Shown here piece by piece: positions 17,691 through 64,000 of a stretch of 64,000 nt of DNA (position 1 is the first letter of the stretch; each line of letters starts with the position of its first letter). The translations under genes were made by a program, and so were the position numbers. Under the pieces are notes generated by a model. That model had not been told where the DNA came from and did not search any database. It saw nothing but the letters and a program-made list of their open reading frames with translations. Source of the stretch: Isurus oxyrinchus (lineage: Eukaryota); contig JANJGN010000385.1 in the NCBI GenBank assembly GCA_026770705.1, positions 1-64,000 of the forward strand, in the 5' to 3' direction.

Positions 17691-17713
17691 TGAGATTGTT
17701 GCTGCACAAAGCT

Positions 17714-17853
17714 TCAAACAGTCTGTCGACTTCCTTTCACTGTTTTTCTCTCCCAGACACAGACTCCAGCGATAGTGATAACCACAGCCACAAGGAATAT
17801 CACAGCTCGTATTCCCAGGATCAGGATCACGTGCAGAATCTCTTCTCCACTGT
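17714..17853 (-). CDS. Activating-type TM/short-tail exon (gene 2)
   Basis: ttctctag|AC AGT...TGA; DSGEEILHVILILGIRAVIFLVAVVITIAGVCVWERKTVKGSRQTV*; Arg in the membrane segment, no Tyr in the tail. Confidence 0.85.
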
Positions 17854-20800
17854 CTAGAGAACACACAGAAAGAAATCATCTCCGCTTTCAATCTCTCACT
17901 CTGGCTGAACAATCAAGCTTCATATCACTGCAACATTTGCTGTATTATTGACCCATCCACTGGGATTCAATGTGGAATGAATGTTTTCATTGTAAACACT
18001 CTAAGAGTGGACAATCGGAACTTTCCCCTTAGCGTGGAACATTGGTGAGAATGGATCATTGTGCTGTTGGACTCCCTGTCCAATTTTTCTCTCCATCGCT
18101 GTGTACAGGATTGTGTTGTAGAAAATTCTGGAAACGTTTAGTGCAGGGTGGAAATCCATCTCGGACGCGTGTGCGAATCGGGCAGGATCGAGATGGCCTC
18201 CCCAACAGACTTACACCCCCCGCTTAATAAACAGTTCCAATCTTTACCCAGAGAGAGGGGAGAATGTGGAACTCGCTCCCACAGGGAGTGGTCGAGGTGA
18301 ATAGTAGCAAATTAGGAAGGGAAATTGCTTGAAAAGCTTGGGGATGCAAGGGTTAAGTGTGACCGTGCCACCACTGGTGGGAGAGTGTAACTACAGCGTG
18401 ACGTTTACATAGGCAATCCCCATTATGAACATGGACATCATGTGAAAAATGGGCACTGGAAAGCTGAGAACATGATCTAAGCTTTTCAACAACAGGAATT
18501 CCCTTCCTAAACCTCTCCACCTCTCTCTTACTCTCAGATACTCAAACAAAATTTCACACAAAATCATGTAAGAGGAGTTAGGACAGGTGACTCGTCAAAG
18601 GATTAGGTTTCAGGAAACTTCTTAAAGGAGGATAGAGAGTTGGAGAGGCAGAGTGTATCTGTGAGTATCTCTGTGCATCTGAGTATCTCTGTGCATCTGA
18701 GTGTCTGTAATAGACCTTGCAATTTCCATATTCTTCCATAAATATGAAAGGGAACACAAAACCCAGAATCGAGGTCAATAGTCCGGTGCAGCACTGAGGG
18801 AGGTCAGGTAACCCACAGGGCAGTATGTGATAGGGTGTTTGTTTGTGAGTGTGTCTTTGTGTGTACTCATACATGTGGGATTGTGTGTCTGCAGGTGTCT
18901 GCTTAGGTCTGTATATTTGTGTGTATTTGTGTAGTGTTTGAACCTGAGAGTGATGTTGAAGTCTGTGTAACTCACGTTCCACAGTGATGGTTATGGACAC
19001 CTCCACTGCTCCATGTTCATTCTCTGCCACACACTGATAGTCTCCAGTGTCCCTGGATGTAACGTGAGGAATCACCAACCACAGCTCGTTGTTGGAACTT
19101 GTTCTGTTCATTGTGACATTGAGATGTCAGGGCAGGACTCAACAAGACAGCTCGCAGGTTTACCAACAGAAAATGAACAACAATTTATATTTAAAGGGAA
19201 GAGAGTGCTGATTGGTTGGCAAGTGGTCTCTGATTAGAGGAGGTGTTGCCATGGAAAATAACGTGTGCAAGCTGTAAAGTTTAGACAGCTTGTCACTTCA
19301 TTCAGCAATAATCAATTAAAGATCAGTTAACTTCTATCGACTGTGAAGCACTTTGAGTGGCCTGAGAATATGGATACTGAGAATGGGCTGCACTGTCAGA
19401 GGGTCAGCGCTGAGGGAGTGCTGATGTAGAATGAAGGGTGTCCGTACTTACCTTGCACAGTTAGTACGAGGGTCCGCTCCGATGAAACAGATGGATATCT
19501 CACTCTGCAGCTGAGATTGTGTCCGTGGTGTTTGAGTGATGGGATCAGGGTCAGAACAGAAGTATAGGTCAGAGTGACACCATGCTGAGTTACAGTGTTT
19601 GAGACTGATCCAGGTACGTCAGTGGGAGTGTCCCAGGTTAAGACAGGTGCTGCTGTTCCATTGCACGTTGTGTTGAAGGTGCAGCTTACATCCACACGCT
19701 TTCCTGCAATAATTTCAGCAGGGAATATCGTGGGTTTATCTGTGAAATCTAACAGACAGAGAATGGATCCTTTTAGAGAAATATAACGTGAAGCATCAGT
19801 TCAAATAGAAATCACAGTCCCACAAAAGAAAGCACTTTTACAAGGATGATATCAGATCTGAGAGGTTACAACGATCAGGAGAGAATTTCCTGCTTTGAGA
19901 CTTTGGTGTTTCTGTCTCTCAGCTTAATATACGTTCACTCCGAGAAACTTGAACTGATAATAGTGGGTGAGGGTGGAGGAGCAGACCAGAGTTTGGAGTG
20001 CACTACCCCATCATTCACTCAGCGATCTGGGCCATTTGTTACCTGTCAATTGTGGGAGCTTGCTGTGCGCAAATTGGTTGTTGTGTTTCCCACATTACAA
20101 CAGTAACTACAATTCAGGAATCAGCTCATTGGCTGTGAAATGATTTGGTCTGTGCTGAGGTGGTGAAAGGTGCTACAGAAATGTGAATCATTCTTCTGTC
20201 GATATGTCAGACTTCGAGACAGGATTAGAGAGATTGATGGGAGTGGATAACCTGATAACATTGATGGACACAGTCAATACATTTAATCATTGATATTAAA
20301 CGTGATTATTAGAGTTTGCTTTTGGACTGAACTGGAAGCTATCACCAGGTTACCAGGTTGCATGTTAACTCAAAATTAAGAATCTAAATGGTCTAGAGGA
20401 GCATAGAACAATAGATTATATTTATATAGTGCCTATATTGTAATATAACATGCCAAGGTGCTCCACAGGAGCATTATAATAGAAAGTATGGTCCCACGCC
20501 ATATAAGGAGATATTAGGTCAGATAATCAGAACTTTGGTTGAAGAGGTGGGTTTTAAGGAGCACCTTAAAGGAGGAGATAGAAAGATGAAAGGATTTAAG
20601 TCTCAGGACCCAGGCTACTGAAGGCTTGGCCGTCCATGCTGGAGCGATGGAAATCAGGGATGCTGAAGAGTCCAGAGGTAGAGGAGTGCAGAAATCTGGG
20701 AAGGCTGTCGCACAGGAGGAGATTACAGAGATAGGGAGGAAGCAAGGACGAGCATTTTGAAATCAAGACATTGCTTGTCCAGGAGCCATTCAAGGTCAGA

Positions 20801-23800
20801 GAGTACAGGGGGGGATAAGGGAACGGGAGTTACTGCTGGTTACGACAGGGGCAGCTGAGTTTTAGATGACCCCAAGTTTACAGAGGGTAGAATGTGCGAG
20901 ACCAGCCAGGAGTGAGTTGGAATAACCGAGCGGGATGAGATGAGATGGAGATTGAGATCTCCGAGGATGGGAATTCAGTCGGTGCAGAGACGGAGGGAGG
21001 AAAGCAGTGAAGATATCCCGGGGCGAAGATGTTTATCATTCCTGGAGTGATCAGCGATAGAGAACGAGAATTTAGAAGGAGAGATGAGAGGGGTGGAACA
21101 CGGTGAGATATTCAAAGGAGCAGAAAGTGCCAGAGGAGGTGGGGGTGGGGGTCAGGCCAAGGTGTGATTTGGTGATAAGCTCCGCACTGTCACCAGGTCA
21201 GTCCTGACGGTGTGAGGGGTGGAAGGTGTAGTGGGGAGGAGACACGTCATTCAGGGGGGAGGTGTCATCACCCCTCAGCTCGGTTTACGTTACAGCTATG
21301 ATGTCAATTCAATCACACACAATAAGCTCATGGATCTGGGAGCAGAAATAGACAAATCATTAAAAATAGTGACGCTGGTTAACACGGCCAAAAAACAAGC
21401 AAATCAAACACTATTATTTCCCATTGAGTGTTGGATGTGAATTGTTGAGTAATTATAACACAGCACTTACCAGAAACGTGAAGCTGGGTTACAGGGTAAT
21501 AGTTATGGCTCGGACCATTGTCAAATTCTATTCTGAAAAAATAAGGTCCTGCATCTTCCCGTGTGATGTTGTTTATAATCAGGGAACAGTCGCCATCTTT
21601 CAGGTCTCCAGACAGCCGGGTCCGATGGTGGAACCGTGGTAAATCGTGACTGTGATCCTTGGAGTGAAAGGCTATAGACAATGTATTCCATTTGTCCCTC
21701 CTCATATTCCAGATTCCGACACGTGTTTTCTCTAACAAATGTGATGGGTAATTGTAATGACATGGAATCTGTACACATGAACCTTCCTGCGCTGTCACCT
21801 CTCGTGGAGTGTTACTTTCCCATTCTTGTGACAGTCCAACTGGGGAGAGAAATATCAATATTTAAATCTGGATAATTTGTAGATCCACTAGACTCGATAT
21901 CCACTCCCTCCATCACTGGGGCACAGTGGCTGCTGTGTGGACCATCTACAGGACACACATGGAACTCCCCAAGGTTTCACAACGGATGGAAGGGAATCCT
22001 GGACACAGGAGTGGACAAGTTCATTCTACATTGGCTCATGGTCCTCAGGACCCTGTTTGTGCACAAGCCTGCTATCCAACAGAACTGAAGTTGGGGAAAA
22101 TCCATTTGGAATTCCACTGTCCAGGGCATTGGGTTAACTTGCTGAGTTTGTTTTAAATCTTACATCTATTTTTGGTCTGTTGCTTTAAAATGAGTGTAAC
22201 TGGGGATCAGGTTAATTAGGAATTCGAGGAGTTATTATAGCAGTCATTGTAGTCTTATGTATGTGCTTGAAACCTTTTATTTTGATGACAAATATTTTAA
22301 TTTATTTTTTTAATTCTCTAATTTTCTTGGTGTAATTAGTGCTTCTGAATTCAGTGCACACATCTCATAATAAATACAAATTGCAAAATCATTATGATAG
22401 TGTGACCACCTTTCTCTCATGGACTTGGTCTGCCTGGCACACATCACCTGCCAAGTGATAACACTGTTGTAATATGCCTTTCAGGGACAGCAGCATGACA
22501 TCACTCGAGGGGAAGTGTGTCATGTGATCTATAGGAACGGCGGTTGGCTTAAGTCAGTTCTATGTGTCTATTTGTGTGTTAGGCATAAGGTCTATCTTTA
22601 AGTTCAAGTTTAGTTTGTATTTTTGTGTTTAGGTGTTTTGAAAAGATAGAATTTGACTTTAAAAGAAGCCAGCATTCCTTTGAGGTTTTATGACTGTTGA
22701 AGGGAAGTCAAAACAAACACAAGGTGTAAGAAACTGTGCTGTTGCCCAGCAACAGTGATCCAGAGGGAAGGACCCACAGAGACAGAGAAAAACAGAAAAG
22801 TACTTTCAGTTCTGTTGAAAGGAGTTGCCAGGAGAAGCAGCAAAGGAGCGGGACAGATAGTCAGTCCCAAAGTAAAGAAGAAGCCAAAACCATCGAGTGG
22901 AACAGGAGAAAGGGCCCAAGAAAACCTTCTAGTCAAATCTGGAAAAGGCCCTGTTAAGTGAAGTTAAGAGTGAGGAGCAGAAGAAGGCTTCAAACATAAA
23001 GGGAGAAAGCAGCAGGACACAGACCTAAAGCAAAATAGGCTTGTGAGAAGCCAGAAGATCCTAGGAGACACCACAGGTTGGTGACTCATTACTACGGCCA
23101 TGTGAAGCCATGGTGTTCCATTGACACGGCTGAGCATTGGAGAGACAGGGCGTGGAAGGAAGGCTGAATGCACCTGGCGATCCAGGGGGCAGGAACATGG
23201 GAAGGAGAGTTTGAAATAGTGAAAGTGGACCCTTGTGGAAGGTATCTGAGTGAAAGTGTCATGTTGGAGAAGATTCCAAAGAAAGCACTTGGCTCTCTTT
23301 GAGATTGGAAACTCTCATGTGAAAGACGCAGTTTCGTTAGACCAGTTGCCTCACGGTGTAACAATTGTCTGGAGTAGGTTGAGGAGGGACCCGGAGCATT
23401 TGTTTCACGTGGGTTCTGTCACTTGGTTTCAGAATGTGGTATCCCTGACCACAGGTCATCTATTGGTTTACATCGACTGTGTACTTAGTGTGAACATGAG
23501 AGTATAAGATAGTTATTGTAATTGTGTTATCCTTATGAATCTGTAAATGTATAGGTCTGGGTGAAGGAGGAATGTAATATAGTTTGTCTTTCCTAGTTTA
23601 ATAAATGTTTTATTCTTTTGTTAGAAGGTCATCAGATGACTTCTGTGACTCTGTTCAGTAGCCGCACTCCACATTCCTAAATAAAAAATAAAAGTTAGGA
23701 CCTATCAAGCTGAGTTCCACCCTGGGATCTGACTTGCCCAGTAGTAACATCAGTTGGGATGATAACACCATTCAGTCCAAGTTTCACTTTGGCCTGTGAG

Positions 23801-26800
23801 CAGAACACAGCTCACACAGTTTGGCTGCAGGTGTCTCCCAGCTTTCTATCCTTGTATATCTGTTCTCATGTCCCTGTTCTAAATAACTGAACCCACAATG
23901 TATTTACCCAATTCCGTATCAGTGGTTGGTGCCTTTATATCATTATAAAAACACAACATGGTGATCAGCGGTGGCCAAACATTCTGGCAGCAAGATTCAG
24001 TACAGGTATGACGTGGTGAACAGCCTTAGATCGAGCTACATGACATGAGACGACCCTCGACGCTTTGGTCAGACCACAACAGAGACACAGCATCAGAGAG
24101 GGTTGAAATTGCAGTGTACTGACTGCTCAGGAAACCTTTGAAGACACAGTGACGGGAAAGAGCTCAAGTAAAGAGCTGGGGAGCAGACGGATCCCTCGTG
24201 GTGAGATTACAGCACACGGCCTGTAGGTCAGTGAGTGGGACAGTGTGTATCGCCAGGACCAGCAGCGGGTTAGCTCAGTCAGGGAAGGCGAGTGACCAGG
24301 GTGTGGGCTGGATCGATAGTGAGCAAGCGAGAGTCAAACACACAAAAACCATTATAAAAATCAGGCCAGAGAAGTTAGTGATTATAACGGGCGGCTTCGA
24401 GATTGCTGAACAGCAAATTGAATAAAAAACAAAGACTCCATTACTCCGTGGTGTGTTCCTGCCACAACCCGTCTTCGTGGGCGGAGCTTCGGAAAAGCAC
24501 ACAAAAGGGGCTAAAGCGACACTCATCCCAGGTCCTGTAGGAGAAGGAAGGTCAAAGGAATATTGTCAGAATGTCCACAAAATTCCCCAGTTTGAACTGG
24601 GATGTAGCTGACCGACTATCTGAATTCAGAATGTTTAAACAGCGTACAGAGCTCTGGTTTCCTGATTCAGGTGTGACTGAACCAGACGAGCCACCCATAA
24701 AAATTCACCTCGTGATTGGGAATGAAGGTCTACACAGGCTGAACACGTCAGGATTAACAGCAGAAGAGTGAAAGGATCCCCAATAGATATGGACGATATT
24801 GGAAGACAGGTTCAGAATCAGGTGAAACTCCATATTCATCAACTAGAGTTTATGTCATTTCATCAGCCTACACAATCCATAGACCACTTTGTCAGCCAAT
24901 GTAGAGAAAAGGGTACGCACTGTGATTTCAAACACAGAGCCTGCAGACAGAGTTGTTGAGTTGGTGATCGCATCCACTCCCATGGAAGCCTTCCAGAAAG
25001 ATCTGCTAGATAAGTCCAAAACCTATAGCATTGAAGAGCTACTCAAGGATGGACATAAATACGAAGTAATCCTCGCAGGTCAACGAAGCTTACAGGTCCT
25101 CAGTACAACATCAATTGTTGACACACTCACTAGAACATCCAAACCTAGTGAGACGTGTGGAAGGTGTGGCCTTCTGCAGGCACCAAGGAAATGCCCAGCT
25201 TTCCACCACTCCTGCAAGGCTTGTGGCAGAAAGGGCCATTGACAGCGGCAGGGCACTAGAGCAAAGGCTGATGCAGCTACAAAGAGCCGTGCGCTGATCC
25301 AAACAGACCCTACACAACTGGGAACCTTCAAGCAATAAGAATGACCATCCACTATCCCATCAGGAACATATACATGTGGTGACAGACAAACCAGGAAATG
25401 GCGATGATGTGCACGGTGAGACGAGGAGCGGTGATCGATATTCCACCTCTCACACATATCCTGACGTGGCTTGCCAATAAATTGTGGATTGTTGTCCTTA
25501 ATGATCTCTCTCAGCACATCAAATAAACTGAAAATGTCCCATAGGGGTGGGATTTTCTGGCCCCACCCACTGCCAGGATTATCCAGTCTGGCCAAAAGCC
25601 AATGGATTTATGTTTGTCCCAGTTTCACATACTACCCCATCACCTCAATTCATGACATAACATTGAAATATGCAGAAAGTTTCAACAATATTGGCAGTTT
25701 CAAAGGAGCTCCAACATTACACCTGCTGGACAATGCAAGTCTGTCAATTGATCTAGTCCATTTAGCACAACACAAATGCCAGCAGCTGCAAGAGGGAACG
25801 GTGAAAGCTTCTACGCTACAGAAACTGAGGAAGCATCATTGAAGGATCTCCTGATTCAACTTGATCTTATTGGGATGAGCAAGGCATCTCCCAGGGAGTC
25901 ATTTTTAAAGGCAGGCAGGGCATCATACTGGAATCTTTGTGATCCGATATTCTTCAACAACTTGGCAGTGGGAAATAGTGGGGACAGCCTGTCAAGGTAA
26001 GAAAATGAGGGGCCCATTGGCAGGTGTCAGTACTGTCCACATGTGTGTCCATCTCAGGCTGTTGGCTGGCCGAGTGCTTACAAGGATTTGAGATCACCTA
26101 CAACATTTTGACTGTGACTCTCAGCACTCCACTGTGCCTGCTCTTGGACAATGTCCTTTACCGCGCATCGAAGGGAGGGCCTGCTGAACCTGCAATGTGA
26201 AAAACTGCCCAGTGGGACAATTCCAACCTGGCCAATCACCACCTTATTAATTTACTCTTCATCATAAGCAAAGTGACAAAGGTGTAATGGACATTAAGAG
26301 GCATTGACTCAACAATAACCTGCTCATCCAGCATGGTGGTAGTGCCACACAACACAATGGAGGGTATCCTCAGTGAAAGGACGGGACTTCATCTCCAAGG
26401 TTTCTGTTCAGGACCAGGGTCCTATGGAATCATTACACACAAAGGATCAGCGGTGAGGCCTAACCGAGGATAAATCAGATCCATTCCCGCTCCTCAATCA
26501 CCGTACAGTCCTGTTGCATGGAGTCATCGGGCTGAATTTTCCCGTTGGCGAGCAGGGGGCAGGGCCTGCTCAGCGACACTATGATGATGCGGGATGACAT
26601 CAGGAGGAACCCCCGACATCATCCTGCCCCATTTAAATATTCAGACCCACCCCCCCCGACAGGCAGGAAATTCAGCCCATAGAGTCATAGATTCACAGGG
26701 GTCCACAGCACAGTAAAAGGCCCTTTGGCCCATCGAATCTGCGTCGGTCAAACAAGTACCTAATTATTCTAATCCCATTAATGCACTGGGCCCAAAGCCT

Positions 26801-29800
26801 TGTATGCGATGGCATCACAAGTGCACATCCAAATACTTCTTAAATGTTATGAGGGTTTCTGCCTCTCCCACCCTTTCAGGCAGTGAGTTCCAGATTCAAT
26901 CTATGCAACATCCTGGTAAATCTCCTCTGCACCCTCTCTAGGGCAATCACATCCTTCCTATAATGTGGGTTCCAGAACTGCACGCAATATTCTAGCTGTG
27001 GCCTAACCAGTGTTCTATACAGTTCCAGCATAACCTCCCTGCTCTTATATTCTATCTCTCGGCTAATAAAGGCAAGTATTCCATATGCCTTCTTAACCAC
27101 CTTATCCACCTGTCCCACTACTTTAAGGGAACGGTGGACATGCACACCAAGGTCCCTCTGATCCTTGTTACTTTCCAGGGTCCTACCATTCATTGTCTAT
27201 TCCTGTGCCTTGTTTATCCTGCCCAAGTGCATCACCTCACACTTATCCAGGTTAAATTCCATTTGGCACTGATCAGTCCATCTGACCAGCCCGTCTATAT
27301 CCCCCTGTAATCTAAGGCTATCCTCTTCATTATTTACCACCCCATCAATTTCCATATCATCCGCGAAGTCACTGATCAACCTTCCTACATTCAAGTTTAG
27401 ACCGTTTATATATACCACAAACAGCAAGGGACCCAACACCGATCCCTGTGGAACCCCACTGGACACAGGCATCCAGTCACAAAAACACCCGTCGACCATC
27501 ACCCTCTACTTCCTGGCACTCAGCCAATTCTGGATCCAATTTGCCAAATTCCCTTGGATCCCATGTGCTCTTACTTTCGTTTACAGTCTCCCATGCTGGA
27601 CCTTATCAAAAGCCTTGCTGATGTCCAAGTTGACTATGTCAAATTCATTGCCCTCATCTACACAATTGGTCACCTCTTCAAAAAATTCAATCAAACTGGT
27701 CAGACATGACCTCCCTTTAACAAAACCATGCTGACTGTCCTTGATTAATCCCTGCCTCTCCAAGTGTAGATTAATTCTGTCCCTCAGAATTGCTTTCAAT
27801 AGTTTCCCCACCACTGAGGTTAGACTGACTGACCTGTTGTTCCCTGGTTTATCCCTTCCTCCCTTCTTGAATAACGCTACCACATTGGCTGTCCTCCAGT
27901 CCTCTGGTACCTCTCCTCTGGCCAGAGATGTATTGAAAATTATTGCCAGCACCCCTGCTATCTCCTCCTTTGCCTCACTCAACAGCCTGAGATACATTTC
28001 ATCCGGGCCTGCAGATATATCTACGTTTGAGACTGCCAGACAACTTAGAACCTCGTTCCTTTCTATTCTAATTTCTTTAACTATATCACAGTCCTTCTGC
28101 CTGATTTCCAAACCCACATTGCCCCTCTCACTTGTGAACACTGACACAAAGTGTTCATTTAGAACCCTACCTACATCTTCCGGTTCCACACACAAACTAC
28201 CAATATGGTCCTTAATGGGCCTTACTCTTTCCCTAGTTATCCTCTTACTCTTAATGTACTTGTAAAATAACTTTGGATTTTCCTTCATTTTTCCTGCTAA
28301 TGTTTCTTCATGGCCCCTTTTTGCTCTACTAATTTTCTTTTTAAGGTCCCCCCTACACATTCTATACTCTTCTAAGGCTTCCACTGTTTTGAGCCTTTGG
28401 TATCTGCCATAAGCCTCCCTTTTTCTCTTTATCCAATCCTGTAAATCTCTCGACATCCAGGATTCCCTGGATTTGTTGGTCCCACCCTTTGCCTTTACTG
28501 GAATATGTTGGCCCTGTACTCTCCCCACTTCCTTCCTGAATGAGTCCCATTGCTCTGACGCAGATTTCCCTAAAGGTAGCTGCTCCCAGTTCCACTCTGG
28601 CCAAATCATATTTGATCTTATTAAAATCAGCCTTCCACCAATTGAGAACTCAGATTTCTGGCCCATCCTTGTTCTTTTCCATAACAACCTAGAATCTAAT
28701 GGAATGATGATCACTATCTGCACAATGCTCCCCCACTGATACGTCTACAACTTGCCTGGTTACATTCCTTAAAATTTACTCCAGGACCGACCCCTCTCTT
28801 GTAGGATTTTCTATGTACTGGCTTAAAAATCTCTCCTGGATGCATTTTAACAATTCTGCCCCCTCTAAAACTATCACACTATGACTAACCCAGTTATTGT
28901 TGGGGAAGGTGAAAAGCCCCACCATTACAACCCGATTATTTTTATACTTCTCTGAATTTTGCCTTTGTATCTGCACTTCTATTTCTCTGAGTGTCATTGG
29001 GCCTGTAGAACACTCCCAGCAAGCTGATTGTTCCTTATTTGTTTTTAGGTTCTACCCATATGGCTTCATTTGAGGAGCCCCCTAAGGTGTCTTCCCTCCT
29101 CACTGCAATAACTGATTCCTTGATCAATCTTGCAATACCCCCTCCTCTTTTACCTCCTTCCCTGTCTTGCCAGAAGACCCTGTATCCTGTAATATTGAGC
29201 GGCCAATCCTGCCCCTCTCTAATCCATGTCTGTGACAGCAATGACATCATACATCCATGTGTTATTTGTGCCCTCAACTCATCTGCTTTATTCGTCAGAC
29301 TCCTTGCATTAAAGTAAATATAATCCAACTTTGCCACGCTATCTTGTGCCTTAACTGGCCAATAATTTCTCTGCCTTCCAGGTTCACTTGCTCTCTCTTC
29401 TAATTTTGGCTGTGCATCTCCCTCTGCTGAACCTCCTCTCTGGATCCCATCCCCTGCCTCCCCAATTGCATCAAGGGTAAAATGCCAATTGAAACCAGGG
29501 ACAACATCCAAGAATGACAATCCCACAGATCACTGTGAGCATTTAAAGACACCTCCAGACAAGGTTACCAACACAAGATCTGGGCGTAAGTGCAGATTAC
29601 CTCTACTCTTTAGACACTCAAATATTCAACAAATCTATACTGTTATGTAATTGTCAATAAAATTGAAAATGATACCAGAAACCTCTTGTTCCCTGTCCTT
29701 CTCAAAGATCCATCCCTGCAGCTGGAGCCTTAAGAGTTATTGATGTGGGTCTTAATTTATCAGATTGTAGAATGATCGGGAACAAAAGGAAGCCATTTGG

Positions 29801-32800
29801 CCCATCGAGCCTGTGCTGGGCTTTTGAAAGATCTGTCCAATTAGTCCCACACTCACCTCTGCTCTCTCCTCCACAGCCCTGCAAAATGTCACCTTCAAGT
29901 ATTTATCCAGTTCCCCTTCTGAAAGTTCCTGTTGAATCTGCTTCCACCGCCCTTTCAGGCAGTGAGTCAATGGTCTCTCTCTGAGCTGCAAAGTGCTCAG
30001 ATTCTGTGAAATTTAAACTCTGCAGCAGGTCAGAGACACTCATGATAACTCAGAATATTTGACAGTTTTACACACGGACAGCTTTACCTTCCTTCTCTCT
30101 TTCAGTTATCTTGCTCCCTTATTGAAGTATCTAGCAAGGTGAGAATGGACAGGAAGTGTGACACTGAACAGCCTGTCTATTCTAGGAGCTGCTGTGTTGT
30201 CTTCATGGGCAATTTTGAATAAAGGCAGCAAAGGACACAAATTTCAGGTCATTGCTATCGGAGACCTCACATTAGGATAGACTTCATCCCCCAGTTTTTA
30301 TCCCTGATTTTCTATTCAGCCGATCGCTGCCCTGTCATTGGCTGACCTACACTAACTCTCAGTCCAGCAATGACTCAAATTTCAAATTCTCATCATTGAT
30401 TTCTTACCCCACCATCCCCCCTCTACACTCTCTATCTGTGTAACCTCCTCCAACCCTAAATCCCTCTGAGATCTCTGCTCTCCTCCAATTCTGCTGTCAG
30501 ACAGGAGGTCAGTGTGTATCAGTAAGCACAGGGGTGATGGGTGAATGGGACTTGGTGTGAGTTTGTACACTGGCTCACTGGCTCAATCGGGCAGGATTGA
30601 GATGGACTCCCCCACGGACTTACACCCCCCGCTTACTAAACAGTTCCAATCTTTACCCAGAGAGAGGGGAGAATGTGGAACTCACTCCCACAGGGAATGG
30701 TTGAGGTGAACAGTATCGATGTATTTAAGGGGCATGAGGGTTGGTAACCAGAGGGACACAGATTGATGAACCGGATGGGGAATTTGTTTTGACAGAGCGA
30801 GTTGTTGTGATCTGGAAGGTGCTGCCTGAAAGGGCGGTGGAAGCAGATCCAATAAGAACTTTCAAAAGGGAAATTGGATAAACACTTGAAGGAGGAAGAT
30901 GGGGGCAAAGTGGAGTGGTGGTTAGTGGATCTGATTGGATAGAACATTGAAAGACCTGGCACAGGCTCAATGGGCTGAATGGCCTCCTCCTGTGCTGTAT
31001 CATTCTCCGCTTCCATGATCTCTCCCCCAGTCAGTAACCACTCCAGATCCCTCTTGAAGGTGACAGAGAGACAGTAACCACCACACCCTCTGACAGCACA
31101 TTCCCGAGGATCACTACTCTCTGGGAAAAGATGAACTCCCCAACATCCAGCCTATTCCTGCTTCCCAGAGAGTGTAAACCCTTCAGGGAGGCACTGAGGG
31201 AGTTTTCAATAAAATGACATCAAATCCACCGTTTGAGAAACAATTGAATTCCGAAGAACTCACAGCTTGTGTAGCAAACTGGGAAGTAGAGTTGCTGGGA
31301 AAGCTGGGAAACACAAGGATTAAGGGCTACAATGCCACCACTGGTGAGAGGCTGTAACTACAGCGTGACGTTTACATAGGCAGTCATCATTATAAACAGG
31401 GGCTTTGGACATACTGGGAATTATGTGCACGGAAATAGTGAGAACATTATGTAAGCTTTTCACCAGCAGGAATTCTCTTCCTAAACCCCTCCAACTCTCT
31501 CTTACTCTCAGATACACAAAGAAAATCACACAGAATCAGATAAGGAGGAGTTGGGTTGGTGATTCGTCAAAGGGTTAGGTTTCAGGAAGCTTCTTAAAGG
31601 GAGAGAGAGAGAGTTGGAGACGCAGAGAGTATCTGTGAGAGCCTCTAAACATCTGAGTGTCTGTAATAGTAATTTCCATATTCTTCCATAAATATGAATG
31701 GGAACACAAATCCCAGAATTCAGGCTAACTCTCCAGTGCAGTAGTGAGGGAGGTCAGGTAACCCATGAGGGAGTGAGTGTTAGTGTTTGTGTGTGAGTGT
31801 GTCTTTGTGTGTGGTCATATATGTGTGTCTGCACGTGTCTATTTAGGTGTGTATGTTCGATGGTGTTTGTGTAGTGTTCGAATCTGAGAGAGATGTTGAA
31901 GTCTGTGTAACTCACGTTCCACAGTAATGGTTATGAACCCCTCCACTGCTCCATGTTCATTCTCTGCCACACACTGATAGTCTCCAGTGTCCCTGGAGGT
32001 AATGTGAGGAATCACCAACCACAGCTCATTGTTGGAACTTGTTCTGTTCATTTGGACATTCAGATGTCATGGCAGGAATCAAGAAGCCCGTTCACAGGAT
32101 TACCAACAGAAAGTGAACAACAATTTATACTTAATGGGAAGAGAGTGCTGATTGGTTGGCAAGTGGTCTCTGATAGGTGGAGGTGTTGCCATGGAGAATG
32201 GTGTGTGCGAGATGTAAAGTTTAGACAGCTTGTCTCTTCATTCAGCAATAATCATATAAAGATCAATTAACTTCTATCGACTTTGAAGCACTTAGAGAGG
32301 CCTTAGAATGTGGATACTGAGAACGGGCTGCACTGTCAGAGGGTCTGCGCTGAGGGAGTGCTGATGTAGAATGAAAGGTGTATGTAATTACCTTGCACAG
32401 TTAGTACGAGGGTCCGCTCCGATGAAACAGATGGATATCTCACTCTGCAGCTGAGAGTGTGTCCATGGTGTTTGAGTGATGGGATCAGGGTCAGAACAGA
32501 AGTATAGGTCAGAGTGACACCATGCTGAGTTACAGTGTTTGAGACGGATCCAGGTACGTCAGTGGGAGTGTCCCAGGTTAAGACAGGTGCTGCTGTTCCA
32601 TTGCACGTTGTGTTGAAGGTGCAGCTTACATCCACACGCTTTCCTGCAATAATTTCAGCAGGGAATATCATGGGTTTATCTGTGAAATCTAACAGACAGA
32701 GAATGGATCCTTTTAGAGAAATATAACGTGAAGCATCAGTTCAAATAGAAACCACAGTCCCACAAGAGAAAGCACTTTTACAAGGATGATATCAGAACTG

Positions 32801-34818
32801 AGAGGTTACAATGATCAGGAAAGATTTTCTTGCTCTTTGGCAGTAGTGTTTCTGTCTCTCAGCTTAATACACGTTCACTCTGAGACATGTGAATTGAGAA
32901 CACTGGATGAGAGAAGAGGCTCAGACCAGAGATTGGAGTTAAAAGCAGAATACTGTGGATGCTGGAAATCTGAAACCAAAACAAAAATTGCTGGAAAGAC
33001 TCAGCAGGTCTGACAGTATCAGTGGAGAGGAAGACAGGGTTAACGTTTTGAGTCCGTATGACTCTTCATCAGACCAGAGGTTTGAGTTCACTGGCTTCTC
33101 ATTTCCTCAGTGATCTGGGTGATTTATTACATTGTGGTTTGCTGGATCTTGCTGTGCACAAACTGCCTGCTGTGTTTTACATCTGTGACTACAATTCAGG
33201 AATAATTTCATTGGCTGTGAAGGGATTTGGATCCTCCTGAGGTGGTAAATTGCGCTGCAGAAATGCACATCTTTCTTTTATCGATACGTCAGACTTTTAA
33301 ACAGGACAGGAGAGATTGATGGGAGTGGATAACCTGATAATACAGTTAATGCTTTTCATCATTGATATTAAAGTGAGTATTAGATGTTGCTTTAGGACTA
33401 AACTGGAAGCCATCACCAGGTTATTGAGAATCAGACAATGTGTTAAAACAAGCTGTGTTTTGTGTTAATATGTAAACGTCACAGTTTGTGTTATTTCCCA
33501 TTGAGTGTTGAATGTGAATTGTTGAGTAATTATAACACAGCACTTACCAGAAACGTGAAGCTGGGTTACAGGGTAATAGTTATGGCTCGGACCATTGTCA
33601 AATTCTATTCTGAAAAAATAAGGTCCTGCATCTTCCCGTCTGATGTTGTTTATAATCAGGGAACAGTCGCCATCTTTCAGGTCTCCAGACAGCCGGGTCT
33701 GATGGCGGAACCGTGGTAACTCGAGACTGTGATCCTTGGAGTGAAAGGCTATGGGAGCCCAGGGAATCTGTTTCTCATTATTAAACCAGACTCCACCTCG
33801 TGGTTGATTTTCCAAATGTGCTGGATAACTGTAATGACATGGAATCTGTACACACGAACCTTCCTGCGCTGTCACCTCTCGTGGAGTGTCACCTTTCCAC
33901 TCTTGTGACAGTCCAACTGGGGAGAGAAATATCAATATTTAACTCTGGATGGTTTGTAGATCCACTAGACTCGATATCCACCCCCTCCATCACTGGGGCA
34001 CATTGGCTGCAGTGTGGACCATCTACAGGACACACATGGAACTCCCCAGGGGTTTCATAATGGATGGAAGAGAATCCTGGACACAGGAGTGGACAACTTC
34101 ATTCTACATTGGCTCATGGTCCTCAGGACCCTGTTTAGTGAAGCCAGTCTTCCACCCAACACAGTGTTTACAAGACACACAGGGAAACTGTGTAAACATC
34201 TCATCTCTCTAAACTGACTGGTTTGTCTTCGGTTTAACTTTCAGTTATTTTACTTCCTTATTATGGTTGCTATGGTGAAACTGTGCAGGAAGTGCGAGGG
34301 CTGGACTCTCTGTCTATTCTCACTGCAGCTGTGATGTAGTCGTGGTGGTTTTCAGTAAAATGAAACCCTCTGATCTCCTCCATCGCCGAGGTTTAGGGAG
34401 TGAATTCCAGAGCTCAGGCCCCAGGCAGCTGAAGGCCCGGCCGCCAGTATTGGAGTGATGGGAATCGGGGGATGGTCAAGAGGCCGGAATTGGAGTAACA
34501 CAGAGATCTGGGACGTTGGTTGGGAGAGTTGCAGGAGGTTACAGAGATAAGGAGGCAGTGTGAGGCAATGGATGCATTTGAACAAAGAGATGTGAATCTT
34601 AAGTTTGAGATGTTGTAGGACCAGGAGTCAGATAGTTTAGGGGTGATGGGTGAATGGGACTTGGTGTGAGTTTGTACACTGGCTCACTGCTGAATCAGTT
34701 CCCAATCACAGCTCAATAAGAATGATCTTTTACAAAGACTATTCACCATAAATCTGTCTGAGCTGACGATGATATTACCTTGGAGAAGTGACAGGAGGAA
34801 GTAAGATTTCCCGACCAT
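17714..34818 (-). CDS. Genes 3+2: putative fused activating Siglec-like receptor L-V3-C2-V2-C2-TM(Arg), about 503 aa
   Basis: Exons 34779-34818, 33548-33916, 32392-32688, 21471-21839, 19452-19748, 17714-17853; all phase 1 and open. No leader for gene 2 and no TM for gene 3 was found between them; deletion junction at about 30585. Confidence 0.6.
18976..19128 (-). pseudogene. Remnant 3' half of third Ig exon (gene 2)
   Basis: HLNVTMNRT...TITVE retained; 5' half and acceptor replaced by unrelated ~190-bp sequence; in-frame TGA at the junction. Confidence 0.8.
19452..19748 (-). CDS. Gene 2 first C2-set exon
   Basis: 297 bp, intact splice sites, open frame. Confidence 0.88.
21471..21839 (-). 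CDS. Gene 2 V-set exon
   Basis: 369 bp, SCVQIPC, DCSL and YFFR intact; distinct loop LEKTRVGIWNMRRDKWNTLS. Confidence 0.9.
22464..23766 (+). mobile_element. LTR-like element
   Basis: TGTTG...ATAACA termini, AATAAA near the 3' end, no coding homology recognised. Confidence 0.45.
23780..26500 (+). mobile_element. Degenerate Gypsy-like LTR retrotransposon (LTR end, PBS-like site, gag)
   Basis: ACA|TGGTGATCAGCGGTGG at 23959; gag remnants and Cys knuckles CGRCG...CPA...CKACGRKGH. Confidence 0.7.
26678..29460 (-). mobile_element. CR1 LINE ORF2 (endonuclease plus RT), frameshifted
   Basis: YFNARSL...DREGGKRGGG (APE endonuclease); QHGFVKGRSCLT, LDISKAFDKV, GVPQGSVLGP, FADD (RT). Confidence 0.92.
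31916..32068 (-). pseudogene. Remnant 3' half of third Ig exon (gene 3)
   Basis: Same replacement and TGA junction as 18976-19128. Confidence 0.8.
32392..32688 (-). CDS. Gene 3 first C2-set exon
   Basis: 297 bp, open, ttag| and |gtaatt. Confidence 0.88.
33548..33916 (-). CDS. Gene 3 V-set exon
   Basis: 369 bp; differs from the gene 1 V domain at 5 residues. Confidence 0.9.
34779..34818 (-). CDS. Gene 3 signal-peptide exon [13 protein letters not shown]
   Basis: 40-bp coding part with phase-1 donor. Confidence 0.83.
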
Positions 34819-35389: not shown

Positions 35390-35409
35390 TGAGACAAAAT
35401 GAGGAAGTG
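35390..35409 (-). promoter_or_regulatory. PU.1/ETS site upstream of gene 3 (AP-1 mutated to TGAGACA)
   Basis: Same position in the conserved promoter block. Confidence 0.5.
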
Positions 35410-57600: not shown

Positions 57601-59226
57601 CCTGGATTCTGGGATTTGTGTTCCCAATCATATTTATGGAAGAATATGGAAATTACAAAGTCTATTACAGACACTCAGATGCATAGAGACACTCACAGAT
57701 ACTCTCTGCCTCTCCAACTCTCTCTCTCCCTTTAAGAAGCTTCCTGAAAGCTAACCCTTCGAACAATCACCGGCCCCAACTCCTCCTTATCTGATTCTGT
57801 GTGATTTTGTTTGTGTATCTGAGAGTAAGAGAGAGGTGGAGAGGTTTAGTTAGAGAATTCCTGCTGGTGAAAATCTTACATCATTTACTCACCTTTCCAG
57901 TGCACATATTTCCCAGTATGTCCAATGCCCCTGTTGATAATGATGACTGCCTATGTAAACGTCACGCTGTAGTTACAGTCTCCCACCAGTGGTGGCATTG
58001 TAGCACTTAATCCTTGTGTTTCCCAGCTTTTCAAGCAACTCCACTTCCCAGTTTGCTACACAAGCTGTGAGTTCATCAGAATTAAATTATTTCTCAAATG
58101 ATAGATTTGATAATTCATTTTATTGAAAACTTCCTCAGCGCCTCCCTGAAGGGTCTACACTCTCTGGGAAGCAGGAATAGGCTGGATGTTGGGGAGTTCA
58201 TCTTTTCCCAGAGAGTAGGGATCCTTGAGAATGTGCTGTCAGTGGGTGTGGTAGTTCCGGTTTCTCTGTCGCCTTCAAGAGGGATCTGGAGTGGTTACTG
58301 ACTGGGGGAGAGATCATGGAAGCGGAGAATGATACAGCACAGGAGGAGGCCATTCAGCCCATTGTGCCTGTGCCAGGTCTTTCAATGTTCTATCCAATCA
58401 GATCCACTAACCACCACTCCACTTTACCCCATCTTCCTCCTTCAAGTGTTTATCCAATTTCCCTTTTGAAAGTTCCTATTGAATCTGCTTCCACCGCCCT
58501 TTCAGGCAGCACCTTCCAGATCACAACAACTCGCTCTGTCAAAACAAATTCTCCTCATCTCCCCCTCCAGTTGGTCAATCTGTGTCCCTCTGGTTACCAA
58601 CCCTCCTGCCCCTTAAATACATCGATACTGTTCACCTCAACCACTCCCTGTGGGAGTGAGTTCCACATTCTCCCCTCTCTCTGGGTAAAGATTGGAACTG
58701 TTTATTAAGCGGGGGGTGTAAGTCCGTGGGGGAGTCCATCTCGATCCTGCCCGATTCGCACACGCATCCGAGATGGATTTCCACCCTGCACTAAACGTTT
58801 CCAGAATTTTCTACAGCACAATCCTGTACACAGCGATGGAGAGAAACATTGGACAGGGAGTCCAACATCACAATGATCCATTCTCACCAATGTTCCACGC
58901 TAAGGGGAAAGTTCCGATTGTCCACTCTTAGAGTGTTTACAATGAAAACATTCATTCCACATTGAATCCCAGTGGATGGGTCAATATTACAGCAAATGTT
59001 GCAGTGATATGAAGCTTGATTGTTCAGCCAGAGTGAGAGATTGAAAGCGGAGAGTCAGTGATGATTTCTTTCTGTGTGTTCTCTAGACAGTGGAGGAGAG
59101 ATTCTGCACGTGATCCTGATCCTGGGAATACGAGCTGTGCTATTCCTTGTGGCTGTGGTTATCACTATCGCTGGAGTCTGTGTCTGGGAGAGACAAACAG
59201 TGAAAGGAAGTCGACAGACTGTTTGA
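54648..59226 (+). pseudogene. Gene 5: activating-type Siglec-like gene with disabled V exon
   Basis: Leader 54670-54705 has a 4-bp deletion. V 55409-55783 has acceptor cag>tat and TGA at 55426-55428. C2 56643-56939 is intact. Half-exon remnant at 57265-57415. TM(Arg) 59087-59226 is intact. Confidence 0.8.
56256..56293 (+). ncRNA. Minimal hammerhead-ribozyme-like motif (gene 5 intron, sense)
   Basis: GGT-CTGATGA-A-GAGTC(ATACG)GACTC-GAAA-CGTT-A-ACC. Confidence 0.45.
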
Positions 59227-59349
59227 AGCTTTGTACAGCAACAATCTGGTCAGTCAGTGCGGACAAATAACGTGTGATGTTGGGTTAAGTTGTAATGAAA
59301 CTGGTCAGTGTCCTGGTTAGAATCACCTTCGTATCAGAGAGGCATTCCA

Positions 59350-59945
59350 GCACAGTAGGAGACCATTCAGCCCATTAAGTCCATGCTGTCTCTGTGTAGA
59401 GCAATACAGTCAGTCCCATTCCCCCTCTCTATCCCCGTATCTCTGCAAGTTTATTTCCAAGTGTCCATCCAATTTCCTTTTGAAATCGTTCATCGTCTCC
59501 GCTTCCACCATCCTCGTAGGCAGCGAGTTCCAGCTCATTACCACTCGCTGTGTAAAAAAGTTCCTCCTCACATCCCCCCTCTGCCCACAACCTTCAATCT
59601 GTGTCCCCCAGTCCTTGTACCATCAGCTAATGGCAACAGCTTCTCTTTGTCTACCGTATCTAAACCCATCATCATCTTGTACACCTCGATCAGATCCCCC
59701 CTCAATCTCCTTTGCTCCAAGGAGAACAACCCCAGCTTCTCCAACCCAACCTTGAAGCTAAAATCCCTCATCCCTGGACCCATTCTGCTCAATCTCCTCC
59801 CCACCCTCTCAAGGACCCTCACTTCCTTCCCAAAGTGAGGAGACCAGAACTGGACACAATACTCTAGTTGTGACCTAACCAGAGCTTTATAAATGTTCAG
59901 CATAACCTCCCTGTGTTTGTACTCAGTCCCTCCATTTATGAAAAG
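59350..59945 (-). mobile_element. CR1 LINE 3' fragment (inverted duplicated copy)
   Basis: ORF 59568-59993 peptide. Confidence 0.85.
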
Positions 59946-60659
59946 CTTATTCTTTCCATCAGCACAAACAGCAATTTCCAAGCGGACTCCCATCAGCAGA
60001 CAGAGTGCAATGAAACATCGGCATGCCTGCTTCTTAATGTACGGAGAGAAACCTGGAACGAGAGATTCTCCTTCTTCTCCTCAGCAAGCTGAAACTTTTC
60101 CTTATACCTGGTGCTCCCCAGTCCTGCTGTGTGGACACATCATAACCACGGCATTGTCTGGCTGTGTGCAGCCAACATGGTCGAATAGGAATGAACAGAA
60201 ATGTGACATTGCTAAACTCTGTTCTCTGATTGGAATGTGCTTTCTGAATGCTGCACCTTTTTCATGCTGCGATAGATTGTAAGAAGCATTTGGGTTATGA
60301 ATAAAATTACATTGATTAACACAAGTGATTAAAATGCTCAGCCTTTTCTGTAGATACTTATGGATGAAAATTCTTATTTTCCTGCCAGATTCTTGGCTCA
60401 AAGACATTATTTCATGTTGTCACTTTTTCCAGTCAGATGAATTCCCGTGGCCATCTTTATAATGGAAATTTCCAATGTAAACATGTCACATTGTAGCTGC
60501 ACACTCCTGCCAGTGGTGGTGCCATTCCAAAACTGTCTTGCTGCACCAGCACAGTGAGAATTATTCTCGACATGTACATGATGTTGTTGTTACTCAGACA
60601 TCAGGCGGAATCTTGGGCTGTGCCTAGAATGCACTTAGGACATTGCAGACCACGCACAG

Positions 60660-62480
60660 AACTGACAGTGCAGCGTTTCCTCAATCCTGACCCTCGGTCA
60701 GTGCAGCGCTCCCTCATTACTGTCCCTCTGACAGTGCTGCACTACCTCATTATTGACCCTTTTCAAGTGCAGCACCCTGTCAGCACTGACCTTCTGACAG
60801 TGCAGCACACCCTCATGGCTGACAATCTGACACTGCAGCACTCCCTCAGTACTCATCCACCCACAGTGCAGCACTCCCTCAGTACTGATCCTCTGACACT
60901 GTATCCCTCCCTCACTACTGACATTCCGACAGTTCAGCACTCCCACGGTACACACCTTCTGACAGTGCAGCACTCCCTCAGTACAGACTCTCTGACAGTG
61001 CAGCACTCCCTCAGTACTCACCCTCCCACAGCGCAGCCCTCTCTCAGTACTCACCCTCCCACAGTGCAGCACTCCCTCAGTACTCACCCTCCCACGGTGC
61101 TGTTCGAGTTGATTCAATCAAGACTGGTGCCCAAAGAGGGAGGTTTCAATGCTAAATCATTGAATCGGTGAAAATTATTTTTAGGCTTACGGGAACAAGA
61201 CTTAGTTCCTCAAATCCTTTCTTTTGCAATAAAACACAGTACAAGAATTCTGTTTAAATAAATTCCAGTTAAACTTTGCCATGAAAGGATATCTCCTCAC
61301 ACTCCACTCTACCTCAGTACTAACCCTCCCACAGTCCGGCACCCCCTCAATACTGACCCTCTGACTGTGCGGAACTCACTCAATACAGACCCGCCGACAG
61401 TTCAGCACTCCCACATTACTGACCCTCTGACAGTGCAGCACTCCCTCATTACTGACCCTCTGACAGTGCAGCACTCCCTCGGTACAGACGCACTGACAGT
61501 GCAGCACTCCCTCAGTACTGACACTCTGACAGTGCAGCACACCCTCACTACTGACCCTCTGACAGTGCAGCACTCCCTCAGTACTCAGCTTCCCACAGTG
61601 CAGCACTCCCTCAGTACTCACCCTCCCACAGTGCAGCACTCCCTCAGTACTCACCCTCCCACAGTGCAGCACTCCCTCAGTACTCACCCTCCCGCAGTGC
61701 AGCACTCTCTCAGTACTGACCCTCCCACAGTGCAGCCCTCCCTCTGTACTCACCTTCCCACAGTGCAGCACTCCCTCAATTCTCACCCTCCCACAGTTCA
61801 GCCCTCCCTCTGTACACACCCTCCCACAGTGCAGCACTCCCTCAGTCTCACCCTCCCACAGTGCAGCACTCCCTCAGTACACACCCTCCCACAGTGCAGC
61901 ACTCCCTCAGTACTCACCCTCCCACAGTGCTGTGCGAGTTGTTTCAATCAAGACTGGTGCACAAAAAGGGAGGTTTCAATGCTAAATCATTGAAATCGAT
62001 GAAAATTATTTTTAGGCTTATGGGAACAAGACTTAGTTCCTCAAATCCTTTCTTTTGCAATAACACACTACAAGAATTCTGTTTAAATAAATTCCAGTTA
62101 AACTTTGCCATGAAAGGATATCTTCTCACACTCCGCTCTACCTCAGCACTAACCCTCCTACAGTCTGGCACCCCCTCAATACTGACCCTCCGACTGTGCG
62201 GAACTCACAGTACAGACAATCTGACAGTGCAGCACTCCCTCATTACTGACCCTCTGACAGTGCAGCACTCCCACATTACTGACCCTCTGACAGTGCAGCA
62301 CTCCCACATTACTGACCCTCTGACAGTGCAGCACTCCCTCATTACTGACCCTCTGACAGTGCAGCAATCCCACATTACTGACCCTCTGACAGTGCAGCAC
62401 TCCCACATTACTGACCCTCCCACAGTGCAGCACTCCCACAGTAGAGTCCCGCTGACAGTGCAGCACTCCCTCCGTAATGA
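60660..62480. repeat. 33-bp minisatellite arrays, inverted orientation, spacer present twice
   Basis: Reverse-complement unit; spacer at about 61098-61310 and 61928-62140. Confidence 0.92.
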
Positions 62481-62697
62481 TAACAGGGGTCGTTGAAATG
62501 TATCATACGGCCCGAGACCTGTATTGGGGACTCTATCGCCTGAGTTTCAGCCTCTGTGGTGAGGGGGAGGAGTCTAATCCCACGGAGCCAATGGAGAAGC
62601 TTCATGACTACAGCTGCCCAAATATGAGCTGACAGATCACACATGGTAAACGTTTTGCTGAGAGCACAAAACATCCTCGATCTTCTCACTGATTACC

Positions 62698-62717
62698 CAC
62701 TTCCTCATTTTGTCTCA
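62698..62717 (+). promoter_or_regulatory. PU.1/ETS site upstream of gene 6
   Basis: cacttcctcattttgtctca. Confidence 0.5.
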
Positions 62718-63288
62718 CAGTGACACATCCACCCTTTCTAATTAAACACACAGAGGGAGCAGCACAGGAAGAGGTCATTCAGCTCAAGCAGAGCGTGTGG
62801 GCAGTTCCTCCCCAGGCGAGCAGTCGGACAGGTCCTGGGTAAGTAACGGAACGATTGGAATTCACTTCCACCACCAACACCGTCCTTTGTTGATGTTGTG
62901 ACTTTATAAAGACAGATTCCAATGATTGATGCCTTTGAAAGATTTCTACTGGTTATTGAGATCTGGGTGTGAGACTCAAGTCTGTTGTACAGAACATCTT
63001 TCTAGCTCAAGGGATGAGGGAAGTGCAGAGACATGAGCTTTGGGACGTCTTGAGGTGGTGAAAGGTGCTATAGAAATGCAAATCCTTTAATGTTTTTCTT
63101 TCTTAAAGTCTTGTAACTCTCTGCAGAGCACCTATCATCCCACAGAGAATCAAATTAGTCTGTAAAGACATTGTCCAAAAACAGTTCTGATCTCTTGAGA
63201 GCTGTCGGACAAGAGGTGAGGTCTCATTAACTCCTTTCTCTTTCAGAGTTTGAGAGTCAGAAGCTTATGAAGTATCTGGGAGTGGACA

Positions 63289-63328
63289 ATGATCGGGAAA
63301 TCCTACTTCCTCCTGTCACTTCTCGAAG
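63289..63328 (+). CDS. Gene 6 signal-peptide exon [13 protein letters not shown] (gene continues beyond the window)
   Basis: ATG...GAAG|gtaata, preceded by the conserved promoter block. Confidence 0.8.
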
Positions 63329-64000
63329 GTAATAACATCGTCAGCTCGGACAGGTTTATGGCTAATAGTCTTTGTAAAAGATCATTCTTATTGAGTGTGA
63401 TTGGGGACCGATTCAGCAGTGAGCCAGTGTACAAACTGACACCAAGTCCCATTCACCCATCACCCCTGTGCTCACTGATATACACTGACTCCCTGTCTGA
63501 CAGCAGAATTGGAGGAGAGCAGAGATCTCAGAGGGATTTAGGGTTGGAGGAGGTTACACAGATAGAGAGTGTAGAGGGGGGATGGTGGGGTAAGAACTCG
63601 ATGATGAGAATTTGAAATTTGAGTCATTGCTGGACTGGGAGTCAGTGTAGTTCAGCCAGTGACAGGAGAGCGATCCACTGACTAGAGAATCAGGAATCCC
63701 AACTGGGGGATGAGGTCTATCCTGATGCTGGGACTCGGATAACAATGCCCTGAAATTTTGTGTCTTTTGCTGATTTTAGTCAGAATTTCCCATGAAGACA
63801 ACACAGCAGCTCCTAGAATAGACAGGCTGTTCAGTGTCACACTTCCTGTCCATTCTCACCATGCTAGATACTTCAATAAGGGAGCAAGATAACTGAAAGA
63901 GAGAGGGAAGGTAAAGCTGTCTGTGTGTAAAGCTGTCAAATATTCTGAGTTATCATGATTGTTTCTGATCTGCTGCAGAGTTTAAAGTTCTCAGAATATT

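Follow-up and report, generated by a model that had tools for sequence, protein, structure and literature searches.

A probable deletion between two neighbouring Siglec-like genes of the shark Isurus oxyrinchus leaves exons that could encode a receptor with two V-set domains

Introduction

The Siglecs are a sialic-acid-lectin family of immune receptors, and two mammalian cases are among those closest to the locus described here. Siglec-12 (Siglec-XII) is a mammalian Siglec with two V-set domains in one polypeptide (PMC6288428), and a human allele is listed as 'SIGLEC14-SIGLEC5 fusion (SIGLEC14 deletion)', with nothing given beyond a SIGLEC14 deletion (PMC6288428). For the architecture of Siglecs in sharks and other cartilaginous fishes, a literature search gave no relevant work. 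We have analysed a window of 64,000 nucleotides from Isurus oxyrinchus (assembly GCA_026770705.1, contig JANJGN010000385.1, positions 1-64,000, forward strand), which holds a cluster of Siglec-like genes, numbered here 1 to 4 on the minus strand and 5 and 6 on the plus strand. Within this cluster, gene 3 and the downstream gene 2 were probably joined by a deletion, and the exons that remain could be spliced into a single receptor with two V-set domains.

The exon map of the cluster was drawn by tblastn with the window's own exon peptides, domains were called on the exons with Pfam, and paralogous blocks and breakpoints were located by self-BLAST of the window. The V exons matched V-set and Ig_CD22, and the C2 exons matched C2-set_2. 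Identity to Carcharodon carcharias proteins labelled Siglec-12, -13, -14 or CD33-like is 77-96% for the V exon peptides; to Carcharodon proteins it is up to 99% for the C2 exon peptides and 91% for the transmembrane (TM) peptide of gene 2.

Results

The junction between genes 3 and 2

In the assembly, the pre-TM intron of gene 3 adjoins the leader-V intron of gene 2. A first-pass annotation, made from the sequence letters, had placed this join at about 30585, and the self-BLAST alignments of the two flanks indeed overlap at 30585-30590. On one side, 30001-30590 is the reverse complement of 63408-63997 (91.9% over 591 columns); on the other, 30585-34554 is the reverse complement of 54769-58756 (93.1% over 4,008 columns). 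The same annotation had recognized the undeleted arrangement in an inverted copy running from gene 5 to gene 6, with CCGATTC at both breakpoints (58751-58757 and 63408-63414), and both sites were confirmed. The missing segment, estimated at about 4.7 kb and said to comprise the TM exon, 3' untranslated region, promoter and leader, measures 4,651 bp in the inverted copy. Below, Q denotes the breakpoint in the pre-TM intron and P that in the leader-V intron.

30585..30590, no strand: deletion junction, 6 bp common to both flank alignments (CCGATT on the transcribed strand)
30001..30590 (-): remnant of the alpha-type leader-V intron of gene 2, beginning 80 bp into the intron, 91.9% identical to the gene 6 intron
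58757..63407 (+): interval retained in the inverted copy (gene 5 to gene 6), 4,651 bp, absent at 30585

The retained interval contains a TM exon (59087-59226), a 3' region, a minisatellite (60662-62470), a promoter region, a leader (63289-63328) and the first 79 bp of intron 1. Between 21852 and 31887, tblastn with the exon peptides found no TM-like, leader-like or other Siglec exon, in line with the earlier statement that gene 3 is without a TM exon and gene 2 without promoter and leader.

Several features of the cluster argue for a deletion between two genes. The first introns are of two types, alpha and beta, which share their first 140 bp and then diverge, and these types alternate along the array (gene 4 alpha, gene 3 beta, gene 2 alpha in the remnant at 30001-30590, gene 1 beta, gene 5 beta, gene 6 alpha); gene 2 was therefore formerly a separate, alpha-type gene. 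A 33-bp minisatellite lies in all other inter-gene spacers, and there is none between genes 3 and 2. Moreover, the two flanks of the junction are almost equally diverged from the inverted copy (93.1% and 91.9%), which is what would be expected if a contiguous ancestral segment had been copied in inverted orientation before the deletion took place.

The same join could have arisen within one gene if a V-C2 module had been inserted there or duplicated in tandem by a non-homologous event: where the duplicated segment runs from P to Q, the topology of the join is identical, and a 59-bp stretch (34639-34696), 96.6% identical to 30530-30588, forms a direct repeat flanking the V-C2 module of gene 3. 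However, past these 59 bp one copy continues as a beta-type and the other as an alpha-type intron, the beta type being common to genes 1 and 5, and the V-C2 module of gene 3 is nearer to those of genes 1 and 5 (93-95%) than to that of gene 2 (87-91%, self-BLAST). The match to gene 5 breaks off precisely at Q and that to gene 6 sets in precisely at P, as a deletion predicts by construction, and a TM exon, spacer and leader are present at this place in all other units. An intragenic origin was rejected on the divergence of the intron types, the affinity of the gene 3 module to genes 1 and 5 and the exact edges of homology, and we regard it as very improbable. Provided that the junction is real, a deletion between two genes is very probably its origin.

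The event had been called a microhomology deletion. The deletion is upheld by the flanks, the intron types and the minisatellite; a role for microhomology is plausible, although a clean microhomology product is not what the join shows. Read along the transcribed strand, genes 5 and 2 have ...CCTGCCCGATTCGCAC on the Q side, with one base different in gene 4, and gene 6 has ...CCGATTCAGCAGTGAGCCAGTG on the P side, with CCGATTCAACAG at the start in gene 1; the Q-side sequence is backed by three concordant paralogues and the P-side sequence by four. The junction itself reads ...CCTGCCCGATT, then GAGCCAGT twice, then G, where the paralogues have GATTCAGCAGTGAGCCAGT. Because CCCGATT is followed there by the two copies of GAGCCAGT, the seventh base of the microhomology was not kept and one base is extra. 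Compared with a simple microhomology product, the join thus carries one substitution and one additional base, which make a perfect 8-bp tandem duplication. The actual microhomology was 4-7 bp, depending on the original P site of gene 2; two of the four paralogues (genes 3 and 4) have CTGATTC at this site. This 8-bp scar fits microhomology-mediated joining followed by drift, or equally end joining with a short templated fill-in, and under either repair route the joining is non-homologous and out of register.

Exons left at the locus and their predicted product

The exons of genes 3 and 2, with the features lying among them, are the following in the order of transcription.

34779..34818 (-): gene 3 leader exon, 40 nt, 13 residues plus 1 base, phase 1
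33548..33916 (-): gene 3 V-set exon (V3), 369 nt, open; Pfam V-set 5.3e-11, Ig_CD22 5.5e-09
32392..32688 (-): gene 3 C2-set exon (C2-3), 297 nt; Pfam C2-set_2 2.9e-09; donor AAG/GTAATT
31905..32066 (-): gene 3 relic of a third immunoglobulin (Ig) exon, 3' half, no acceptor, 5' half replaced, donor still present
26876..29526 (-): decayed long interspersed nuclear element (LINE) in the C2-3 to V2 intron, sense orientation; fragments of reverse transcriptase, Pfam RVT_1 5.6e-10 and 1.4e-09
21471..21839 (-): gene 2 V-set exon (V2), 369 nt, open; Pfam V-set 1.1e-12, Ig_CD22 1.8e-09
19452..19748 (-): gene 2 C2-set exon, 297 nt, open; donor AAG/GTAAGT
18965..19126 (-): gene 2 third-Ig relic, 3' half, no acceptor
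17714..17853 (-): gene 2 TM/short-tail exon, 140 nt including the stop; Arg in the membrane span LGIRAVIFLV

As had been stated in the annotation, the remaining exons are phase 1 and open: all six are open in this frame and have AG acceptors and GT donors. Their lengths add up to 1,512 nt, which makes 503 codons plus a stop. The codons split between exons would encode V at the leader-V and C2-V joins and D at the V-C2 and C2-TM joins, the identical residues being found at the corresponding joins of Carcharodon proteins. The 25-nt context of the V2 acceptor is identical to those of the V acceptors of genes 1 and 3. The intron from C2-3 to V2 runs from 32391 to 21840 (10,552 bp), and the sequence ahead of the gene 3 leader shares homology with that ahead of genes 1, 4 and 6. 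The proposed product of about 503 aa, L-V3-C2-V2-C2-TM(Arg) (L, leader), is thus borne out in its exon bookkeeping, length and Arg; the product itself, like the skipped isoforms suggested with it, stays a prediction, as the RNA shows only the L-V and V-C2 joins described below.

By domain content and motifs, the locus is assigned to the Siglec family, CD33-like type, with glycan binding as a predicted activity. The C2 exons match Pfam C2-set_2 at 7e-09 and 2.9e-09. Both V2 and V3 keep YFFRIE, the F-strand Arg motif (YFFRxE) needed for sialic-acid binding, and in the translations of both modules the cysteines are placed as in Siglecs, with C-x4-PC and DCSL in the V domain and one additional Cys in the first C2. 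With the order V-C2-V-C2, neither V domain would lose the C2 domain that is its partner in the inter-domain disulfide. The main difference between V2 and V3 is in the region of the CC' loop. The TM exon of gene 2 encodes a tail of about 13 cytoplasmic residues, with neither a tyrosine motif nor an immunoreceptor tyrosine-based inhibitory motif, and its membrane span places the locus in the activating, DAP12-type class, for which pairing with the adaptor is predicted.

An additional Ig exon between C2 and TM was considered for the model and rejected, only the 3' half relic without acceptor being present in genes 2, 3 and 5 (57280-57420 in gene 5). In these relics the 3' 160 bp are about 96% identical to intact exons, such as are found in genes 4 and 1, and the 5' half with the acceptor is unrelated sequence. 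The relic should not be spliced in, because it has no acceptor. Since one half-exon relic is common to genes 2, 3 and 5, the loss of the third Ig domain predates their duplication.

Taken as a whole, our best explanation is a germline non-homologous deletion of about 4.65 kb in a tandem pair of activating-type Siglec genes. Gene 3, which lies upstream, would thereby have lost its TM exon and 3' end, and gene 2, downstream of it, its promoter and leader, together with the minisatellite spacer between them; the ends would have been repaired through microhomology of a few bases or through short templated fill-in. What is left is one promoter and leader, V3, C2, a 10.55-kb intron laden with transposable elements (TE), V2, C2 and one Arg-bearing TM exon. 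Transcripts that start at the gene 3 promoter should run on into gene 2, since the remaining exons are all phase 1 with intact splice sites behind one promoter. Default splicing would give a 503-aa L-V-C2-V-C2-TM(Arg) receptor with two complete V-C2 lectin modules, and in-frame skipped forms such as L-V3-C2-TM would be equally possible. We hold this reading, of a deletion-made fusion locus able to yield a two-module receptor, tentatively, at slightly under an even chance. For some fusion transcript anchored by the TM exon of gene 2 the chances appear evenly balanced, and a main product carrying both V domains is rather unlikely. It is likewise unlikely that the fused locus is expressed as one activating receptor, with two Arg-competent V-C2 lectin modules of different CC' loops and one Arg-bearing TM, and is kept by selection; a naturally occurring two-headed Siglec arising from one non-homologous deletion between neighbouring genes, which that would imply, is to be viewed with the same doubt.

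Points that weigh against a working fusion

Several observations weigh against such a receptor, and some of them touch the junction itself. DNA and RNA contigs were mapped over 29900-34900, a stretch that ends before V2; two DNA runs (X1 and X6; organisms A and B) and two probable RNA runs (X14 and X18) were used, all mapped pieces are short Logan contigs, and the results apply to the contigs listed. Among these, none bridges 30585, and the junction rests on the assembly. One could thus see in it a mistake of the assembly, or a structural variant confined to one haplotype, rather than the normal arrangement of the species, all the more as the cluster is full of paralogous blocks of 87-96% identity and of minisatellites, which are hard for assemblers. 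However, collapse and mis-joining occur at homologous positions, and the two sides here share only 4-7 bp; the junction has a small scar of its own; the bins on either side are covered by contigs in both DNA runs; and neither a joint nor a loose end at 30585 was found among the contigs listed, which are part of those of the two DNA runs. An artefact or single-haplotype variant is accordingly improbable in our view, and the deletion is very probably real in the genome.

In the RNA runs, a joint 33916>34779 (leader to V) was found in X18 and a joint 32688>33548 (V to C2) in both X14 and X18, so that L-V-C2 splices like those of gene 3 occur in RNA contigs of two organisms, a point in favour of the fusion reading. 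Through these joints, transcription and splicing are shown for gene 3 or for a paralogue nearly identical to it, such as gene 1. No RNA linking C2-3 to V2 or to the TM exon of gene 2 was found among the listed contigs of the mapped stretch, 29900-34900, which excludes V2.

The sole loose end listed at the C2 donor, a contig of X14 at 32393, goes on into a stretch coding YKPEISQQSE, the next (third) Ig exon of the inhibitory Carcharodon protein P0160. This exon is absent from the window, and the contig therefore stems from a paralogue elsewhere in the genome; as evidence on gene 3 it was rejected as cross-mapping from outside the window. Its C2 exon is at least 97% identical to C2-3, and thus an inhibitory paralogue located elsewhere in the genome, its C2 exon nearly identical to that of gene 3, is expressed.

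The donor of C2-3 is a further weakness. It has T at +5 and is the only one of the five paralogues without G at this position (GTAAGT in three of the other four, GTAAGA in gene 1), and read-through of it adds 18 residues and then meets a stop. We also noted that gene 3, the one copy without a TM exon of its own, is the one with the GTAATT donor (32384-32392, minus strand). The sense-oriented LINE in the long intron could end transcripts early. Moreover, domains were mapped in about 100 listed matches of a word search with Carcharodon P0024, which reached proteins of 195-621 aa, and in none of these close annotated shark relatives does a C2 domain stand between two V domains, all being V-V-(V)-C2 or V-C2.

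The donor, the LINE and the absence of a V-C2-V order among these relatives also speak for a reading in which the deletion is real and the locus is its casualty, gene 3 giving only truncated transcripts and the promoterless exons of gene 2 being silent and preserved so far only because little time has passed since the deletion. The truncation could follow from read-through of the weakened C2 donor or from early polyadenylation in the LINE-laden intron, and the neighbouring gene 5 shows that members of the cluster do decay. Gene 5 (54670-59226, plus strand), which serves as the undeleted reference copy, is itself a pseudogene: its leader (54670-54705) has lost 4 bp, its V acceptor has changed from AG to AT (55407-55408) and an in-frame TGA stands at 55426-55428; its intron 1 also has a 161-bp deletion relative to gene 3 (34555-34715). 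Against a casualty stand the six exons of genes 3 and 2, with about 1.5 kb of coding sequence and all splice sites intact, where the gene 5 copy of equal age has gathered three lesions; so does the V2 acceptor, identical to those of working paralogues. A 10-kb TE-bearing intron is, moreover, unremarkable in a shark gene. The contrast in lesions is compatible both with selection for the fusion and with a deletion of recent date, and the intact exons may simply reflect a young deletion. The ratio of nonsynonymous to synonymous changes (dN/dS) among the V, C2 and TM exons rests on too few differences (0.2-1.1) to show constraint on the exons of gene 2 or to choose between these two accounts. Such a casualty is in our judgement distinctly possible, though short of probable.

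Layout of the cluster

The genes and spacers of the window are arranged as follows.

Gene 4 (minus): leader 46386-46425, V 45095-45463, C2 43483-43779, third Ig intact and ending at 40294, TM 38460-38599
Gene 3 (minus): leader 34779-34818, V 33548-33916, C2 32392-32688, third Ig as 3' half relic, no TM
Gene 2 (minus): no leader, V 21471-21839, C2 19452-19748, third Ig as 3' half relic, TM 17714-17853
Gene 1 (minus): leader 13867-13906, V 12638-13006, C2 11482-11778, third Ig as two intact copies, TM near 8404-8502, different and of inhibitory type
Gene 5 (plus): leader 54670-54705 (frameshifted), V 55409-55783, C2 56643-56939, third Ig as 3' half relic, TM 59087-59226
Gene 6 (plus): leader 63289-63328; V beyond the end of the window
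14715-16369, 35628-37114, 47237-47942 and 60662-62470: 33-bp minisatellite in the inter-gene (TM-to-next-leader) spacers

The larger arrays of the 33-bp minisatellite have 9 to 50 copies with 73-87% matches, and shorter ones lie within genes (3467-3619, 6376-6569 and 40719-41027). A separate tandem array upstream of gene 5 (52918-53985) has a 43/87-bp period, with about 25 copies of the 43-bp unit and 78% matches. The third Ig exon of gene 1 was doubled by a tandem duplication of about 940 bp (9298-10273 against 10240-11197, minus strand, 83.6%).

The youngest block of the window, of about 6.9 kb, pairs 11450-18306 with 32360-39060 at 95-96% identity. It spans the pre-TM intron and TM exon of one gene, the spacer, and then the leader, V and C2 of the next gene, and its edges lie 32 bp beyond a C2 donor and about 130 bp ahead of the Q site. 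This suggests large tracts of gene conversion or unequal exchange, which would make genes 1 and 2 mosaics. Finally, 35269-35349 (minus strand), in the spacer upstream of the gene 3 leader, matches residues 475-501 of the Cetorhinus Siglec-12 protein P0162, in its cytoplasmic part, with 81% identity over 27 aa, and may be the relic of a tail exon.

Discussion

The deletion between genes 3 and 2 is probably real, and the arrangement of the exons is such that a two-headed product could be made from them. If this product exists, a single small deletion could have combined two lectin receptors of one head each into a receptor whose two glycan-binding heads differ, which would be a route to multivalent or dual-specificity innate receptors other than tandem duplication of V exons. 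The locus would then also be a clean, datable example of a change in domain architecture in an immune gene cluster, since both breakpoints are placed to the base and the undeleted state can still be compared in a paralogous copy. Without such a product, the locus is an ordinary victim of rearrangement in a receptor cluster with rapid turnover.

The first-pass annotation had offered Siglec-12 and the human SIGLEC14/5 fusion as parallels, and both proved looser than claimed. The human SIGLEC14/5 fusion is an in-register homologous exchange between near-identical segments and keeps the normal exon count. At the level of the assembly, the shark locus resembles it as a deletion between adjacent Siglec paralogues on the same strand, in which the 3' end of one gene and the 5' end of the next are removed and one promoter is left for a hybrid gene. 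The shark breakpoints differ, however, in lying in non-homologous introns (pre-TM and leader-V) with 4-7 bp of microhomology; because of this the exon set is doubled, instead of the normal number being kept, and the fusion product is a predicted one. With Siglec-12 the predicted receptor would share two V-set domains per polypeptide. In Siglec-12, however, these are adjacent, at Ig1 and Ig2, whereas the shark fusion would have the order V-C2-V-C2, and both of its V domains keep the Arg motif.

Alternating V-C2-V-C2 orders did appear among the matches of an all-against-all search of representatives, but only in distant proteins of 30-38% identity, for example Pelodiscus P0018, Rhinoderma P0131, Pristis P0063 and teleost proteins, predicted as CD22-like or Siglec-like. 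They resemble the predicted shark product in this alternation within a Siglec-family protein. They differ in their low identity and in being automatic models, which may merge tandem genes, and none is known to have arisen through a mapped deletion.

Close relatives are the multi-V Siglec-like genes of sharks and rays (Carcharodon, Cetorhinus, Scyliorhinus, Mustelus and others, by automatic annotation), which form one gene family with the fusion locus, the exon peptides of the window matching Carcharodon proteins at 91-99% identity. Their proteins commonly carry two to four V domains, but these are adjacent (V-V-C2), whereas the exon order of the fusion locus is V-C2-V-C2. In the V-V-C2 proteins P0160 and P0167 of Carcharodon, the V domain farthest from the membrane is of the V2 type, with the same HLLEKTRVGIWNMRRDKWNT loop; one domain type is therefore found in different architectures in closely related sharks.

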